A DNA stretch of 63,971 nucleotides, filler included, from Reticulomyxa filosa (lineage: Eukaryota; Protista; Foraminifera), in assembly GCA_000512085.1 (NCBI GenBank). It is 15 parts of 15 records of this genome, joined end to end, with 100 filler letters (N's around TTAATTAATTAA, not from the genome) between each part and the next. Parts side by side here need not be neighbours in the genome. Positions count along the whole stretch, not along the records: positions 2,423 to 10,317 come from ASPP01033337.1; 14 more parts are not named here. One strand, written 5' to 3'. Positions 2,423 through 11,152 of the stretch are shown here, one piece after another (the first letter of the stretch is position 1; the number at the start of each line of letters is the position of its first letter). A program made the translations under genes and the position numbers. The notes under the pieces were generated by a model. The model saw only the letters and a list, made by a program, of their open reading frames with translations, did no database searches and was not told where the DNA came from.

Positions 2423-2713
2423 TTTGTTTGATAGAATATCTAAAAACAAATTGTATTCGTTGTGCAGCTTTCATGGTTAATTCCTTTTTTTATTTGATCT
2501 TGCCATCGTCGTACGTTCAATCAACTTGTAAATCGTCGAAGCTCATCATAATTTTAACAAAAAATGTATAATCATCTTCCAGACATCCAAACACCATTAA
2601 ACCTAAAAAACAAACAAGCACCCGTTAAAAGGGTCCGTTACGTCAAAAATAATAAATTTCATATTATAATCTTGAACTGCACATTAACTTAGCCAAAGTG
2701 GCAAGGCTAGCCT

Positions 2714-5700
2714 ATGACAGATACTTTTTTTACGAAAGATTCAGAAAGGTATCAAAGAACTCTACACGAAGAAACAACAAAAAAACTGAAATATTATTAC
2801 AAATCGCAAGACAAACTCGCCCCTTTATTTGATGATCCCGAACAATCTATTGACACTTGTTACATTCAATTGGCTCTTTTAAATCAAACAATATTTCGAC
2901 AAAGAAAGGAACAATGGACAAGCACATTAGATTATTCATTGACCTATGATACTGGACAAGAAACAGTGGAATTGCAAGACATTTGGAATGAAACAGATGA
3001 ATTGGAAATACATCACATTGGCATTCGTGGAGAAGCAGGAAGTGGGAAGAGTGTGTTAACACAAAGAATCGCATATCTATGGGCAAATCATCAATTATGG
3101 AATGATCGATTTCAATGGTTATTGCACATTCCATTTCGAAAAATTGCTCACATTTTTGATAACAACAAGAAGAACATAAAATATCAATGGTTGAAAATAA
3201 TGAATGAATTGAATATTCCACAATGGATTACAGATGATACAGATATTGTGTATTCAAAGAATGGATTATTGATATTGGATGGATTTGATGAAATTGCAAA
3301 TGAATTGAATCAAAAACCTGGAATGCAAAAATGGTTACAATATTGTATTGATAATAGAAAATATAGTATAATTATCACAAGTCGTCCAAATGCAATGTGT
3401 TCATATTTGAAAAATCCAAGATTATTGAATGTCATTGGATTTCAATCACAAGATATTCAAAAATATATTCATTCATATTTTCAAAATATTTCAAATGACT
3501 GTAGTGATCATTATTATTATGCAGAAATGTTGATAAAAAAATTGAATGATAATCCACAATTGAAATTATTGAGTCATATTCCATTATATTTGAGATTGTT
3601 TTGTTATTTCACAAGACAACAAATCATCAACGAACAAAAAGAAAAAGAAGACCTTCGAAGTAAATCGGATTTGAATGAATTGAACAATATTCCAATATCG
3701 AAATTGTATAAAAAATTTTTGGAGTGTTATATGAAATGGAATTGGATCAAACTTAATGGAACAAAAAACAAATTAAATGGACAAGATATGTTCAATACAT
3801 TTGAAATGGAAATTGATTATTTGTCACATCTTGCATGGGAAGGATTAAAATCTGGACAAATAATCATTTCATGTAAAATACAACAAAAGGTATTGAATAT
3901 CATCAAAAGCAAATATCCACGTGAACATATTTCAGTGATGTCTCAATGGTCTCGAATCAATTCATTTGGATTTTTACAAGGACAGGAATCAATGAATCCA
4001 TTTCATCCAATTGATTCAGTGTATTTTCCTCATTTGACATTTCAAGAATGGTTTTCTGCTTATTATTTAGTGGATTGTTTGTATCAATCAAATGAAACGA
4101 AAGAGCATCAAGAAGTATGTTCTATTTTAATGAATGAACAATTTAATCCAAAATATTCAACGATGATTCCATTTATGGCTGGAATGTTGTATGACAATAT
4201 TGAAAATGGAAAAGATCGATCAGGATCTGGTTTGTTATATTTTTGGAAATTATTACATTCTTCACCGCCTCAACTCACTCCTATCAATCAAATGATGTTA
4301 TTTGTCCATTGTTTGGATACTTGTAAAGCAGACACAGAAAGTCCATTTCTTTCATTAAAACTCAAATGTTATCATGAAACAGTGATTAATTCATTTAAAT
4401 CATGGCTCATTGCTTGGATCAATTTTGGCAAAAATAAATATTATACCAACCGTTACATGAACAGATCATTAAATAAGATGATGAAAACGCATTTACCCAC
4501 ATTGCAGTATGTTCTTGTTCATCGAGATATCCATTCATGGATTATTGACCAACTCACACAATTTAAAAGCATGATATTAGAAATACAAAAGAAAAGTTTT
4601 ATTAACAACATGAGATTTGGAGATGAATTTTCTCTATTACCATACTTATGTATCTCTACAGAAACATTAGATATTGTTTTGCAATGTTTCGAAGCTAGCA
4701 TTCGATATGACCTTTTCAATGTCGATATTGCGCGATTGTATGGAGAAGCATCAATGAAATTGAAAGAAGATCAATTGGATAGCGTTCTTAAATTTTTGAC
4801 TATTGCCTTGTTTGAAAAAAAAAAGTATGATAAGGCTATTTGGTCACTTAAGGCAATAGTACCAAAATTGAATGAAAGACAAGCGAATGACGTTTTTCAG
4901 TTTTTGATGAATAAGAAAGAAATTTGGAACTATTTGCAGACTTGCTTGCATTGATAGCAGTAAAACTGAGTGGGCAATACTTAAACGATGCATTCAAAAT
5001 TTTGATCACACTCCCAAGCTATGAAATTCCGTATTCTGAATTCACAACACTCGTAATAAATTTACTTGAGGGAAAATGGAATATGATGTTTTTCAATATT
5101 TGCACAATACATTAGATAAAACAGATATATGTTTCAGTAAATTGTATGCAAAAATACTTGAAAATGTAGCAATGAATTTGAAAGGAGAACATTTGGACGT
5201 TGCTCTCAGGTGTTTTATGAAAAAATTACATAACAGATTGTATTCTAATGGATATTTTACAAAGGTATTTGGAAAAATTTTATTAAAATTGAATGAAGAA
5301 CTATTACCTTATGTTCTCCAATGTTTAATGGATGGATTAGAATATAAAAACAAATATATACGCCAAGAATGTGCAAAATTGCTAGGAACATTTTCAATGA
5401 AATGGAATCAAGTCCAATTGAATAGTGCTTTCAAATGCTTGATGAATAGATTAAATGAAAATGCCCATTGGACATATATGAACTCCATTGAAAAAATTTT
5501 ATTACGATTAGAGGAAGAATATTTGGATACAGCTTTTCAATGTTTGATTGATGGATTAGACAATTACAAACAAAGTATTCGCAACGTGTGTGTTAATTTG
5601 TTAGCAGTATCATCAATGAAATGGAATGAAACGCAATTGAATAAACTGCTTATGGAATTGATAACGAAAGTATCAAAAGATAGAAATAAACATGTTCGTT

Positions 5701-8434
5701 ATTCATGTGCAAAAGCAATTCAAAAACTCTTATCATATTTGGATAATAAACAAATAAATGAGGCATTTGGATATTTAATCCATGGATTGAAAGATAAAGA
5801 TAAAAATATTCAAAGTTCATGTACAGAATCACTTGGAAAGATTACAGATAAATTGAATAAAATTCAATTAAATATTTCATTTCAATGTTTGATGAAGAGG
5901 TTGAATAATAAGAATGAAGATATGTTAGTTCGAATGTCATGTGCAGAATCCCTTGGAATAATAGCAATGAAATTAAATGAAACACAATTGAATGATGCTT
6001 TGATATGTTTAATGGATAAATTAAGTGATGAAAATGAAAATGGATTTGTTCAAAAATATTGTGCATATTCGATTGGCAAAATCAATGATAATATTTGTAT
6101 TATTGTATCATTGAAACAATCACTTGAAACAGTTCTAACAAAATTCAACGAAAAACGATTCAATGATACTCTCATGCTATTGTTCAATGGACTCAAAGAT
6201 AAAAATGAATATGTCTGTTTGGATTATGTAAATGAACTGGAAATATTTTTATTGAAATTAAATGGGCAACAATGGAGTACTGCTTTTAAAGTTTTGATTG
6301 ATGGACTCAATGATAAACATGAATGTGTTTGCCACTTATGCGCCAAAGTAATTGAAAAAGTAGCATTGAAATTAGATCAAAAACAAATTGATGAAGCATT
6401 TAACAATTTACTTTGTTTTAATCATAAAGATTATTATGTTCGTTATTTACTTATGAGAACATTTAGGGCACTAGCATTGAAATTGGATGAAAGAAAATTA
6501 GATAAAATATTAGAATGTTTGCTGAATGCACTCAATGATAGAGATACTTTTGTTTATTATGAATCATTTGTGACAAAATTGAATGATAAGCAATTGTATT
6601 TATTGACAAAATATCGTCTGCAGGTTTTGAAAGAGGGTAGAGGAGAACGTCAAAATCTGTCAAACATGCCAGATGACATGTGGCAGCGTGTTGTAATGCA
6701 TGTATTGAAAAGGATGTATCAACGACAAAGAAAAAGAAGAGCAAATTGATTGACAAGGAATATTCACAACAAAATCAATTAAACGAAAGCAAAGAAATAA
6801 ATAATAACAATGATATTGGATTGAAACTATTGGCATTTGGTGTAATGATATATAGCCCTCGAATTCAATTTAATTTAAGTTATGATAAAAATATTATTAA
6901 TTCTGATGCTTTCAAGACATTGTTACAATATTGCAATAAACAAGCCATTCAATGGGGATTGCCAATAGAACAAAGATGGAATGTTGATGATGAAATTCCA
7001 CTTCCTTTTTGTACAAAATTTCTCAACACAAATAAACATAAAGATCGTTACAATATTGTTTGTGAATCAACACGATCAGGTGATATGTCTCAATTGAAAT
7101 CTGCATTGAGGCATCATCACATCAACATTAATGATGCATTCAATGAACATGGGCACGCTCCATTGGCTCTGGCATTACATTACAAACATTGGGATATTGC
7201 TCGCTATTGTATTCAACAAGGTGCATGGATTGATGTTAGAGGAGGCGCATTCAATGAAGCCACTCCGCAAACACCTGTTGAATACATTGTCAAGAACATT
7301 ATAGAGAGCGATAAAGTGGATAAAAATGAATATTTGGAAATGGTGAACATGGGTAAATGGATATTGAGACAACGAACAATACATCCAATGAAACAAATTG
7401 AATATACAATCGATTATGTGAAAGATAAATTGATTGATGAATATGGTTTAAGCAAAGTAATTGATGACAAAAGTTATGAGACATTATTACTTGAAGGTGC
7501 AGCATTTTTATTGGGAGAAAATCAAACTGAATTAAAAGATTTATTAATTAATAATAGTTTATTGTATTGGGGAGCCAGTCGAAATATTATATATATAAAA
7601 CCTGAAGATTGTAAAAAACAAAGATTTGACGAAGGATGGCATCCAATTCCATTTCTTGCTTTTCGAATATTTTTGTTATTTGAAATATGTGTTCGACTGA
7701 AGCGAGAAAAGAGAAACTTAGTTGAATTACCAAAGAATACAACATTTGAACAAATATATGAAAAAGGAGTGAGAGAATTGCAAGTGCAATTGACAACATA
7801 TTGGGATTATCTCACAATTGAAACATTTGAAAATAAATGTCCAGAATTAATTGAAGATTGGAGTTGGAGTGTGGTGGATCGTTTGATGACTTTAAAACCG
7901 ATATCATCAAATGGATATTGTGAAATGAGTTTGATGGTTGGTCATTGTGTGTATTTAAGTTTATGTAAAACATCCAAATTGATTTTGGTGAGAATTGATA
8001 ATCGATGGATGAAAACAGTTCCGTCAAATACTCCTCATCCCAAGAATGGAGATATATTGATTCAACCATATTTGGTTGCATATTTTCAATTGAATGGTTC
8101 GAAAATCAATAAAAATAAGTTATGGTTGAAGGAATATATCAAAAATGCAATAATTTTGAAAAACGAGAAAAGTAAGAAGAGTATGAGGCATTTGTATTGT
8201 AGTGATAAGAGATCACACAATGATTTTCCTCTTCGTGAGGGAAGTCTACCATTGATTGTGAAAGAATGGCCTTATCGTCCAATACAGAAAGATACAAATA
8301 ATTGTTATTTGCGGAATCACAATGTTGGATGTCGAATTCGTTTAGGTAATGCGATTTATCGATGGTTTCATGACCAAGAAATAAAGAGTTCTGTATTTTA
8401 TGCGAAAAATTACAGCGCTGCCGTCCAGAAATAA
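2714..8434 (+). CDS. NLR-like protein: NACHT NTPase + HEAT/ARM repeats + ankyrin repeat + C-terminal putative cysteine-protease domain; intronless, split by three -1 frameshifts (~4915, ~5072, ~6708)
   Basis: Walker A GEAGSGKS (3029-3052), Walker B LLILDGFDE (~3266-3292), sensor IIITSRP, HIPLYL, winged-helix YFPHLTFQEWFSAYYL. Many ~40-aa HEAT-like repeats (VRxSCAxxLGxIxxKLNExQLNxAFxCLMxxL) in 4700-6600. Ankyrin NEHGHAPLALALHYKHWDIARYCIQQGAWIDVR (~7142-7240). ORFs 2714-4954, 4924-5115, 5076-6749 and 6680-8434 overlap and continue the same repeat pattern. Confidence 0.85.
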
Positions 8435-10171
8435 GAGGATCAGGCAAGTTTGCAAAAAAAAGGCAAACATAATCGATTTTTCCTATAAAAACAAGCGTTT
8501 AAAATAGCTACGAAATTTTTAAGATAATTTTGCTTTTTTAATGAAGCACCTCGAGATAATTTTGTTTGAAAGTTTTTTAATTGATAAGTATGTGCACCAA
8601 GAAAATAAACACATCTAATATGCTTATACATTTTTTTTGGAATTTTTATGTGTTTTTTTTTGTTCCTGGACGGCAATATTGCAATTGCTCTTATTGAATA
8701 CAAAACCTTTATTTTCTTCATTACGAAACCATTCATAAATTACATCATCTAAACGAATTCGATATCCAACATTGTGGCTTCGCAAATAACAATTATTTGC
8801 ATCTTTCTGTATTGGACGATAAGGCCATTTTTTCACAATCGATGGTAGACTTCCCTCACGAGGAGGAAAATCATTATGTGATGATTTCTTATCACTACAA
8901 TACAAATGCTTCATACTCTCTTCATTTTCGCTATTTTTCAAAATTATCGCATTTTTGATATATTCCTTCAACCATAACTTATTTTTATTGATTTTCGGAC
9001 TATTCAATTGAAAATATGCAACCAAATATGGTTGAATCAATCCATTTTCATTTTTGGGATGAGAAGTATTTGATGGAACTGTTTCCACCCATCGATTATC
9101 AATTCTCACCAAAATTAATTTGGATGTTTTACATAAACTTAAATACACACAATGATCTTTGTGACCAACCACTAAATTCATTTCACAATATCCATTTGAT
9201 GATATCGGTTTCAAAGTCATCAAACGATCCACCACATTGCGGCTCCAATCATCAATTAATTCTGGATATTTATTTTCAAATGTTTCAATTGTGAGACAAT
9301 CCCAATATGTTGTCAATTGCACTTGCAATTCTCTCACTCCTTTTTCATATATTTGTTCAAATGTTGTATTCTTTGGTAATTCAACTAAGTTTCTCTTTTC
9401 TCGCTTCAGTCGAACACATATTTCAAATAACAAAAATATTCGAAAAGCAAGAAATGGAATTGGATGCCATCCTTCATCAAATCTTTGTTTTTTACAATCT
9501 TCAGGTTTTATATATATAATATTTCGACTGGCTCCCAAATACAATAAACTATTATTAATTAATAAATCTTTTAATCCAGTTTGATTTTCTCCCAATAAAA
9601 ATGTTGCACCTTCAATTAATAGCGTTTGATAACTTATTTCATCAATTGCTTTGCTTACACCATCTTCATCAGTCGATTTATCTTTTACATAATCAATTGC
9701 ATATTTAATTTGTTTCATTGGATATATTGTTCGTTGTCTCAATATCCATTTACACATTTTCATCATTTCCAAATACTCTTTTTCATTTACATTACCATTA
9801 TTATTATTTTTCTCTTTTATAATTTTCTTGGCAATCCATTCAACAGGCGCTTGAGAAGTGACTTCATTGAATGCACCTTCTCTAACATCAATCCATGCGC
9901 CTTGTTTAATGCAATAACGAGCCACATTCCAATTCTTACAATGCATTGCCAAAAGCAATGGTGTGCGTCCACGTCTATTAAATGCATCATTAATGTCAAG
10001 GTGATGACGTTTCAACGTGGATTTCAATCGAGACATATCACCTGATCGTGCTGATTCACAAACAATATTGTAACGATTTTATGTTTGTTTGCGTTGAGAG
10101 ATTTTGTACAAAAAGGAAGTGGGATTTTATCATCAACATTCCATCTCTGTTCTATTGGCAATTTCCATTGA
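6949..10171. repeat. ~1.5-kb inverted repeat (6949-~8434 vs ~8661-10171) with ~225-bp spacer
   Basis: Direct alignment of the + strand with the reverse complement; e.g. 7570-7808 matches ~9298-9536 with a single mismatch. Confidence 0.95.
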
Positions 10172-10221
10172 CTGAGTGTTTTGTCAAATTGTGGATTGTT
10201 TAATCTAGATTTTTGTGACAT
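8624..10221 (-). CDS. Stand-alone ankyrin + putative cysteine-protease protein, inverted paralog of the 3' part of the NLR-like gene (one frameshift near 10078)
   Basis: ORF 8624-10036 is collinear with ORF 6680-8434. Homology extends to ~10171 (QWKLPIEQRWNVDDKIPLPFCTK). Upstream of that is unrelated sequence with an ATG at 10221 (MSQKSRLNNPQFDKTLS). Confidence 0.75.
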
Positions 10222-11152
10222 ACGAAACCTTATTCTTGTATGAGACAAATCCCAAAAGGGCGCTGTCAAATTTTTTTGTATGAAATCAAACGAGAATGCG
10301 AACGGTTTTTTAAAATTNNNNNNNNNNNNNNNNNNNNNNNNNNNNNNNNNNNNNNNNNNNNTTAATTAATTAANNNNNNNNNNNNNNNNNNNNNNNNNNN
10401 NNNNNNNNNNNNNNNNNTCAATATAATTTCTAGTTAAATATGTATATAGTCTCAAAACTAGCTTATTTTTTAATATTATATTATCTCGTTTTAATGGATA
10501 TAGTCTTATAAACATGACATCGTCTTCATTCAGGTAAAATGAAAATTTTCTTTATTTTTAAATATATTCGTTTATTTGTTCAAAGTTTGTGTAGAAAAAA
10601 TATTTAACTTTTTCTTTTTTGTTGCAAATTGAAAAAAAAATTACGTCAGTTTACGTACATGCCACCAAGGCTGAACATTTTTTTGTATCAAATTAGCAAT
10701 AGTGTAAGCGCAAGTTTATTGTTTGAGTTTGTTTTCAATGAAATTTGATATTATTAAGTTTAAAAAAATTTTTACTTTGAAACTCACTAAAAAGAATCAA
10801 AAAAAATCTATATCTGACCATCGTTAGATAGATCTCACAGAAACCAACAACTATCAAGATACTTCAGTATATCAACAAGATTGTTAATTTTGACACTCAA
10901 ATTTCGATTTTCTTTGAAATGAAATTCGTTGCTCAACATACCATTGTGCTTTACTCTTTTGTATAGTTGTGCTTCTGAAAATAGCTTACCCGCATCCGTA
11001 ATGCAAGTATCTTGCAATCGAAAATATATCTCAAACTTTTTGTCAACAAAACTTTAAAATTATTATAATAATGCCACTTTTGGTTACATTTACTCTTTCC
11101 GTTCCCTTCAAAAAAACATTTGCGAAGATGGCAACTTTTTTTGCTTAATGGT

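Follow-up and report, generated by a model that had tools for sequence, protein, structure and literature searches.

The NACHT-HEAT-ANK gene and its inverted partial duplicate

The genome of the foraminifer Reticulomyxa filosa (assembly of 101.9 Mb, 50,809 contigs) carries a gene for a NACHT-HEAT-ankyrin (ANK) protein that ends in a putative cysteine-hydrolase domain. The gene lies in the window, which is the whole stretch of 63,971 nucleotides (nt), filler included, that was presented for study. The piece that was analysed, positions 2423-10317, comes from contig C33337 (ASPP01033337.1). This contig has a G+C content of about 30% and encodes RFI_33979, as judged by a database match. There are four successive open frames on the plus strand, 2714-4954, 4924-5115, 5076-6749, and 6680-8434. 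A tblastn search with an intact paralog of 1,895 aa, encoded in the same genome (L014:2012-7696), showed these frames to be colinear pieces of a single gene, which is therefore interrupted by three frame changes. The frame changes lie at about 4915-4954, 5070-5115, and 6680-6749, and each adjoins an A/G-rich run. The four frames were searched separately and unjoined, and the intact paralog served as the proxy for the full-length protein.

The first frame (2714-4954, plus strand) encodes an N-terminal region of about 100 aa, a NACHT NTPase (about 3020-3487), and then a helical region. It is colinear with paralog residues 9-746. Pfam NACHT (PF05729) matches residues 103-258 of this frame with an E-value of 3.3e-20 and 73 bits, the cut-off being 26.7. 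By translation, Walker A (GEAGSGKS, 3029-3052) and Walker B (LLILDGFDE, 3266-3292) are both intact, and a TSRP motif is present at 3377-3388. The gene belongs with the NACHT clade of the signal transduction ATPases with numerous domains (STAND), as it possesses a NACHT domain above the gathering score, both Walker motifs, and a C-terminal repeat array. Only about 100 residues precede the NACHT, and no N-terminal effector or adaptor domain was identified in the gene by Pfam.

Homology of the first frame to the intact paralog stops at 4915, and in the A/G-rich run of the first frame change (4915-4954, plus strand) the frame of 2714 passes into the frame of 4924. The short middle frame (4924-5115, plus strand) encodes one or two HEAT-like repeats and fills paralog residues of about 747-832, which are covered by none of the other frames. 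A 38-aa repeat pattern, KL..Q.NDAF..L, carries on across the frames into it. The second frame change (5070-5115, plus strand) lies near gggaaaatgg. It is followed by the main HEAT-repeat array (5076-6749, plus strand), which has a period of about 114 nt and is colinear with paralog residues 833-1386. Pfam matches here were to HEAT (6.5e-17), HEAT_2 (1.6e-13), and related ARM/HEAT families, and the direct-repeat families D1-D4 span 4726-6555. The third frame change (6680-6749, plus strand) falls in an A-rich run of a low-complexity, lysine-rich linker in which two open frames overlap. The last frame (6680-8434, plus strand; paralog residues 1387-1895) encodes the linker, about two ankyrin repeats (about 7050-7240), a helical region, and the C-terminal His-Asp-Cys domain. 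The ANK match is weak in this frame (E 0.024, residues 157-187) and clear in the paralogs (PF12796/PF00023).

The original prediction had described a tail-to-tail pair at this locus, and the pair is real. The arms of an inverted repeat, 6946-8434 and 8660-10174, are 82-92% complementary. The minus copy is a partial inverted duplicate of the last 1.5 kb of the plus-strand gene, and it could encode a stand-alone ANK-domain protein. The part of helper, decoy, or substrate that the original prediction had given it is conjectural. Its 470-aa open reading frame (ORF; 8624-10036, minus strand) has an ATG start and contains about two ANK repeats and the full domain. The rest of the duplicated segment (10037-10174, minus strand) holds the first 46 or so duplicated codons, which are out of frame with the 470-aa ORF, the frame change being located at KHK / RYNIV. 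In this part, 10078-10174 matches 6946-7042 at 91%. The duplicate stops at about 10175, where it is bounded by an unrelated dispersed repeat of about 140 nt (10176-10317) that reaches the contig end. Over 30 places on other contigs, often at contig ends, match the dispersed repeat at 80-95% identity, and it probably caused the assembly break. In three contigs with this repeat that were examined, no family member was found beside it. The minus copy was also considered as a full-length gene running past the contig end, and this was rejected because the last 140 nt are the unrelated dispersed repeat.

The plus and minus copies are each other's nearest relatives in a maximum-likelihood tree (support 95). 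Over 449 codons, the nonsynonymous divergence between them (dN) is 0.104 and the synonymous divergence (dS) is 0.198, with a dN/dS of 0.53. The dS is very uneven across three segments (0.49, 0.07, and 0.18), a sign that gene conversion may have affected the middle one. When the last 244 residues were searched against the R. filosa genome, at least 150 scored matches were obtained out of 381 candidates, and about 50 of 150 contain stops. These stops, the dN/dS value, the three frame changes, and a minus copy that is cut at a dispersed repeat with its first codons out of frame could all indicate that both copies in the window are dead relics of a fast-turnover repeat family, of which intact paralogs elsewhere may function. 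This is a serious possibility, although not the one that is favored here. The frame changes of the plus-strand gene may be real decay or may be assembly errors near base runs. All of them lie in A/G-rich runs, a common site of assembly errors, and there is no stop within any long frame. In addition, both copies retain the catalytic-type residues, their dN/dS is clearly under 1, and the 470-aa minus ORF is intact from its ATG.

The His-Asp-Gln-Cys domain and its predicted fold

The C-terminal domain (7604-8431, plus strand) contains a set of residues that resembles the active site of a cysteine hydrolase. By translation, all of them were located where the original prediction had put them, at His 7943, Asp 7997, Gln 8285, and Cys 8303. 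Numbered along the frame 6680-8434, these are His422 (7943-7945), Asp440 (7997-7999, exactly 18 residues on), Gln536 (8285-8287), and Cys542 (8303-8305). The GH...RIDN hairpin (7943-8002, plus strand) holds the candidate general base His422, Asp440, and an invariant Asn (8000-8002). The Gln-x5-Cys segment (8285-8305, plus strand) holds the candidate oxyanion Gln and the candidate nucleophile Cys, and the motif IQKDTNNC spans 8282-8305. On the minus strand, translation likewise places His at 9154, Asp at 9100, Gln at 8809, and Cys at 8791-8789, with IQKDANNC at 8812-8789. The 9-nt deletion that had been noticed beside the His is also real. The plus copy is without HKD just before the His, and the minus copy and other paralogs have it.

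The invariance of these residues in homologs, which had been proposed as a check, was surveyed with hmmalign in 75 domains. These comprised 16 paralog translations from the loci together with database matches down to about 20% identity. The His is kept in 72/75, the Asp and the Asn that follows it each in 73/75, the Cys in 71/75, and the Gln in 62/75 (with Glu in 8 more). The count is also 73/75 for each of two arginines, R234 and R350 (numbered along window:7292-8431). In alignment A2 (39 domains, mean identity 21%), there is no variation in the His, the Asp, the Asn after it, one Glu, and one Tyr, and at least 90% of the domains retain Gly-His, Arg-x-Asp-Asn, Gln, Cys, and a Gly-x-x-x-Arg. 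The family consensus can be written as GH.xY, R[IV]DN.G, and GNC...HNVG. Judged from these alignments, the His/Asp/Gln/Cys pattern is far beyond chance. A profile search among 1.84 billion representatives identified 137 proteins, and no model for the domain was found in Pfam, NCBIfam, or PADLOC. The R. filosa family as a whole had no PADLOC match. Several members (L018:3100-4134, L020:2524-3588, which is P0007, and P0019 and P0039) have Tyr in place of the His, or Ser, Gly, or Ala in place of the Cys, and these may be inactive variants or relics.

Two structural models of the domain were made. The first (380 aa, built with paralogs only) had a predicted local distance difference test score (pLDDT) of 71 and pointed to AnkH (Z 9.0) and AnkD (Z 8.1). 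The second (the 276-aa core, with 44 diverse sequences) had a pLDDT of 88.4 and a predicted template modelling score of 0.87. In this model the His lies just before strand 117-122, the Asp ends the return strand 126-132, and the Cys is the first residue of helix 234-247. From the register, the His and Asp would stand opposite one another across a beta-hairpin. Exhaustive comparison with VIA-align gave AnkH (6mca) at Z 13.2, with 209 aligned residues, an rmsd (root-mean-square deviation) of 3.3, and chain residues 140-381. AnkD (7ew8) followed at Z 12.6, with 212 aligned residues, an rmsd of 3.7, and chain residues 177-424. A second structural look placed 7kj6 and the GNP-bound 7xql, both of LegA15 (AnkD), at Z 12.5. 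AnkH and AnkD are the sole strong structural matches, and both cover the whole domain.

After a large gap, the next matches were XopD (5.1), NopD (4.6), SENP7 (4.4), NEDP1 (4.3), SENP5 (4.0), I7L (3.9), Ulp1 (3.7), and SENP3 (3.7). The second look again listed SENP2, SENP5, Ulp1, SENP1, and I7L. Clan CE peptidases form much of the weak structural tail (Z 3.5-5.1, 121-154 aligned residues). In the structural check that had been proposed, the model is confident and the secondary-structure places of Cys, His, and Asp fit clan CE, but the Z-scores to clan CE peptidases are low and Foldseek returned no significant match.

Searches at the level of sequence did not connect the domain to any of these proteins. 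Neither AnkH nor LegA15 was recovered from PDB sequences with the profiles A1, A2, and A4 (hidden Markov models, HMMs) or with three single homologs (phmmer) at E up to 10. An ESM Atlas fold search of the domain gave nothing usable. Pfam found no match of the domain to the Peptidase_C48 profile at E up to 0.1; PF02902 matches 15 other places in the genome, none of them in the NACHT-HEAT-ANK family. When the domain was compared with the genome's own C48 domains by hhalign, the probability was 0.2%, which is a weak test, as the C48 alignment had only six sequences and a search meant to extend it recovered nothing beyond its query. Because of these negative results the domain was filed as AnkH/AnkD-like and not as Ulp1/C48. 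A reading of the domain as a clan CE protease of the Ulp1 kind had been put forward. Of this, the conserved His/Asp/Gln/Cys set in the clan CE order and a predicted fold like that of AnkH and AnkD stand, and membership of C48/Ulp1 by sequence (PF02902) does not. The predicted model and the motifs support an AnkH/AnkD-like domain with a remote CE-like fold.

True Ulp1-type Peptidase_C48 sequences are also present in R. filosa. At least 15 places match, several of them near-identical 135-aa frames, on contigs C8665, C20725, C5268, C19194, C12827, C4014, C34871, and others. They are a small family apart from the NACHT-HEAT-ANK family.

Clan CE peptidases (Ulp1/SENP of C48, XopD, NopD, NEDP1, and poxvirus I7L) share with the domain the order His, Asp, Gln, Cys and a Gln that stands 5-6 residues ahead of the Cys. 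They differ in the spacing from Asp to Cys, which is about 100 residues in the R. filosa domain and about 45 in Ulp1. The likeness to AnkH (LegA3, PDB 6MCA) goes further. In addition to being the best structural match, AnkH has ankyrin repeats before its domain, the order His-Asp-Cys, the His at a strand start, the Asp at the end of the return strand, and the Cys at a helix start. When compared by eye, its motifs GH, D/N-R, and GNC...NV resemble the three consensus motifs of the R. filosa family. However, the identity is only 9%, and AnkH, a secreted effector of a bacterium, is 460 aa long and has four ANK repeats and a cap domain. The R. filosa domain forms the C-terminus of a 1,900-aa nuclear-encoded NACHT-HEAT protein, and it has an insertion of about 50 residues between the Asp and the Cys. 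The authors of the AnkH structure described the domain as a clan CE-like fold with XopD as its closest match, a triad of H243/D258/C324, and the family motifs rGHa, D/NRg, and GNCSWANV (PMC6712400). The AnkH triad is required in vivo, but protease activity was not detected in vitro, and MEROPS does not list the domain (PMC6712400).

AnkD (LegA15, PDB 7EW8/7KJ6/7XQL) is the second-best structural match, and it shares the layout of ANK repeats plus domain and a conserved Gln...Cys motif (PMC9757750). No similarity of the family to LegA15 was detected at the level of sequence. The triad proposed for AnkD is H268/N290/C361. Here an Asn replaces the triad Asp, and GTP hydrolysis with a dispensable His is reported, whereas the His, Asp, and Asn of the R. 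filosa family are almost invariant. Chen et al. described LegA15 as an atypical GTPase in which binding and hydrolysis need C361, Q356, K367, R291, and R408, and in which H268A has little effect (PMC9757750). The chemistry of the AnkH/AnkD fold is disputed because of this report and because no protease activity of AnkH was detected in vitro.

It is possible that the domain is not a protease. It could be an atypical GTPase or nucleotide-binding module of the LegA15 type, or another Cys-dependent module such as an acyltransferase, and have a regulatory or signalling function within the STAND protein. The match to GNP-bound LegA15, the residues that LegA15 needs for GTP, and the retention of R234 and R350 are consistent with this. 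Clan CE itself includes the YopJ acetyltransferases, and a language-model search gave a weak lead to YopJ-type proteins (0.78, below the tool's 0.9 line). However, a His that is invariant across the 39-sequence alignment and nearly so in the larger survey is hard to explain if it is dispensable, and the order and secondary-structure positions of His, Asp, Gln, and Cys are those of the CE hydrolases. A non-protease domain of this kind is considered unlikely. For a thiol-hydrolase domain, protease or isopeptidase chemistry in particular is about evenly balanced between yes and no, and deubiquitinase or deSUMOylase activity, which the original prediction had suggested, is a conjecture.

The R. 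filosa family and its bacterial relatives

All of the close database matches are R. filosa proteins, annotated as 'NTPase', 'NACHT domain-containing', or 'hypothetical'. Open frames of the family reach 1,895 aa without introns, and the copies are 50-80% identical to one another. The plus-strand gene is one member of an intronless, massively expanded nuclear family with proteins of about 1,900 aa. These proteins are ordered as a short N-terminal region, NACHT, a helical region, the HEAT array, a linker, about two ANK repeats, a second helical region, and, at the C-terminus, the domain of about 270 aa. The original prediction had not recognised this architecture as described. Likewise, a literature search, outside of which the R. 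filosa genome paper lay, found no published description of the NACHT-HEAT-ANK-domain architecture or of the R. filosa family.

R. filosa carries a Midichloriaceae symbiont that was sequenced together with its host (PMC10847448). The contig could in principle come from this symbiont or from a contaminant, and would then hold a bacterial effector or defence gene, as the intronless ORFs, the low G+C content, and nearest relatives outside R. filosa that are bacterial might suggest. This is very improbable. The matches, at least 150 on well over 100 contigs, amount to far more DNA than a genome of 1-2 Mb could hold, and the R. filosa copies form one tight clade that is only about 30% identical to the nearest bacterial proteins. 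In addition, an intact paralog, on contig C11739, adjoins a gene for an Mtr4/DOB1-type helicase. Bacterial contamination was rejected because of the copy number, the single-clade structure, and this linkage, and the family was therefore assigned to the nucleus.

The named or contextualised homologs outside R. filosa are bacterial. Candidatus Jidaibacter acanthamoeba has a 1,882-aa NACHT-ANK-domain protein (WP_039458693) plus a fragment, and a Midichloriaceae metagenome-assembled genome (MAG) has a NACHT-(HEAT)-ANK-domain protein. A Pseudomonadota MAG encodes P0120, a NACHT-HEAT-ANK-domain protein of 1,879 aa, and Candidatus Protochlamydia amoebophila also has a homolog. The same architecture is found in chlamydia-like and Rickettsiales bacteria, some of which are known amoeba symbionts. 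The bacterial proteins have the same domain order as those of R. filosa and a similar length (1,497-2,220 aa). They differ in being uncharacterised and in occurring as single or few copies, whereas R. filosa has hundreds of copies, which make up a separate clade (support 100).

The closest relatives outside the foraminifer, at about 30% identity, include proteins on TARA scaffold_487 and a protein on a further bacterial contig, which has a split NACHT / HEAT-domain gene pair. The TARA scaffold (L021:1-14893) has three tandem NACHT/HEAT/ANK-domain genes beside genes for EF-P, HU, RNase E/G, a TLC nucleotide transporter, and an Hc1 histone-like protein. The pairing of a TLC transporter with Hc1, set here among ordinary bacterial genes, is known from Chlamydiae. 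The genome is chlamydia-like and shows a small family expansion of its own. Two chlamydia-like proteins, P0050 and the 2,220-aa L021 gene product, align colinearly with the intact R. filosa protein in the pre-NACHT and NACHT regions, at 27-28% across some 600 aa (E-values from 2e-60 to 7e-62). The ANK and C-terminal regions of the same two proteins are also homologous to those of the intact R. filosa protein (E 2e-40 and 1e-48). P0120 matches in the NACHT region at 24% (E 4e-27) and weakly in the domain (E 0.009).

In the maximum-likelihood tree, the R. filosa copies were recovered as one clade with a support of 100. With midpoint rooting, in which neither the root nor the origin of the metagenomic rows is secured, this clade is nested in bacterial sequences beside a Rickettsiales NACHT clade. 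This nesting and the colinear bacterial counterparts suggest, from the sequences compared, a transfer of the whole gene, most simply from a bacterium to the foraminifer, followed by expansion.

The domain is also found N-terminal to NACHT (P0102), with TPR repeats, and with ANK alone. This modular occurrence fits an effector or output domain. In P0102 (L034:350-3136) the domain stands ahead of the NACHT, which is the canonical effector position, and a gene for an AAA_14/DUF4143 ATPase follows it. On a bacterial contig (L035:1667-4264 and L035:8001-10043), the ANK-domain protein P0083 is encoded about 3.7 kb from an 865-aa OTU-domain protein, in surroundings that look like an effector-type neighbourhood. 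A further bacterial ANK-domain homolog, P0097, has a weak phmmer match to ubiquitin chains in residues 180-237 (E about 4e-5, no stretch passing alone), which had no Pfam confirmation and is probably spurious.

The stand-alone ANK-domain proteins of intracellular bacteria, one of them beside the OTU-domain protein, are also relevant to a further explanation. The ANK-domain module of the R. filosa proteins could be a sensor or bait that resembles bacterial effectors or binds the same host targets and signals their presence to the NACHT switch, with the minus-strand duplicate as a free bait. The module is at the C-terminus, which is the usual sensor position in NOD-like receptors (NLRs), and some paralogs have lost the His or the Cys. 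However, most copies keep the catalytic-type residues, which a pure bait would not need, and P0102 carries the domain in the N-terminal effector position. A role as sensor or bait is improbable.

A putative STAND switch with a thiol-hydrolase output

The NACHT STAND proteins and NLRs of animals, fungi, and bacteria resemble the R. filosa family in having a NACHT with intact Walker motifs followed by a long repeat array, and in lineage-specific expansion with many broken copies. They are unlike it in that the R. filosa repeats are HEAT and not LRR, WD40, or TPR, and in that the enzymatic-type domain is at the far C-terminus. It had been proposed that the locus encodes a protist immune-like STAND receptor. 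The domain does sit in a NACHT STAND protein of a protist, but the architecture is not confined to protists, as it also occurs in Candidatus Jidaibacter, the Midichloriaceae MAG, and the chlamydia-like TARA scaffold.

The favored reading, which appears reasonably probable, is that the gene belongs to a NACHT-HEAT-ANK family whose C-terminal domain, with an AnkH/AnkD fold, acts as a thiol-hydrolase output. The HEAT and ANK repeats would bind a ligand and the NACHT module would oligomerise. The C-terminal thiol hydrolase would then be activated or concentrated and could cleave a peptide, isopeptide, or similar bond, and this cleavage would be the output of the switch. The analysis shows the architecture, the size of the family, the conservation of the residues, the fold match, the bacterial relatives, and how the duplicate is built; catalysis, the class of substrate, an immune role, and activation through oligomerisation are inferred.

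Several observations weigh against this reading. An enzymatic output at the C-terminus, after the repeats, is unusual for NLRs. The plus copy is interrupted by its three frame changes, and the dN/dS of 0.53 between the local copies is a sign of moderate constraint only. Some family members are without the His or the Cys (L018, L020/P0007, and P0019). The Z-scores to bona fide CE peptidases are low (3.5-5.1), and Foldseek against the PDB gave no significant match for either model, with LegA15 and AnkH appearing only at E 0.4-1.5. The likeness to AnkH and AnkD is structural only, at 9-12% identity, and HMM searches, up to an E-value of 10, recovered no PDB sequence. Finally, no enzymatic activity is known for any member of the family; AnkH had no protease activity in vitro (PMC6712400), and LegA15 is reported as a GTPase in which H268A is nearly without effect (PMC9757750).

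A broader history can be drawn up more tentatively. A complete NACHT-HEAT-ANK-thiol-hydrolase gene may have moved between an intracellular bacterium, either chlamydia-like or of the Midichloriaceae, and the foraminifer. It would then have expanded to hundreds of copies as immune-like receptors with a C-terminal CE-fold Cys-hydrolase output, and AnkH and AnkD would be free-standing versions of an effector module that is otherwise wired to a STAND protein. This history is possible but somewhat doubtful. If it is true, the orphan AnkH/AnkD fold gains a broad family and a testable biochemical context.

Up to now the AnkH/AnkD domain, known from two Legionella effectors, was to our knowledge an orphan fold, and its activity is disputed as protease-like or GTPase. 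By predicted fold and shared motifs, it can now be placed beside a family of sequences for which Pfam and NCBIfam offer no model. Members of this family are joined to NACHT switches, both in a foraminifer, where there are hundreds of copies, and in chlamydia-like and Rickettsiales bacteria. The family offers many natural sequence variants on which the chemistry of the fold can be probed. We know of almost no described innate immunity in Rhizaria, and the STAND/NLR-like protein with its new candidate output domain is a new kind of NLR-like architecture in this group. The family also points to a likely exchange of a whole gene between protists and the bacteria living inside them.

Some other features were observed in the vicinity of family members. 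On contig C12889, a Kelch-repeat ORF and a caspase-domain ORF (Peptidase_C14, E 1.3e-16) lie beside a family member (L015:2281-3516 and L015:4170-5147), and this neighbourhood may be a cluster of conflict or cell-death genes. The window copy and others end right after the domain, and some paralogs run about 100-150 residues past it. In one of these, on contig C15901 (L013:8430-8867), about 146 extra residues without a Pfam match close with the end motif ...VQ.YFD...F..Q..., and similar ends are present in L007, L008, L009, and L017.

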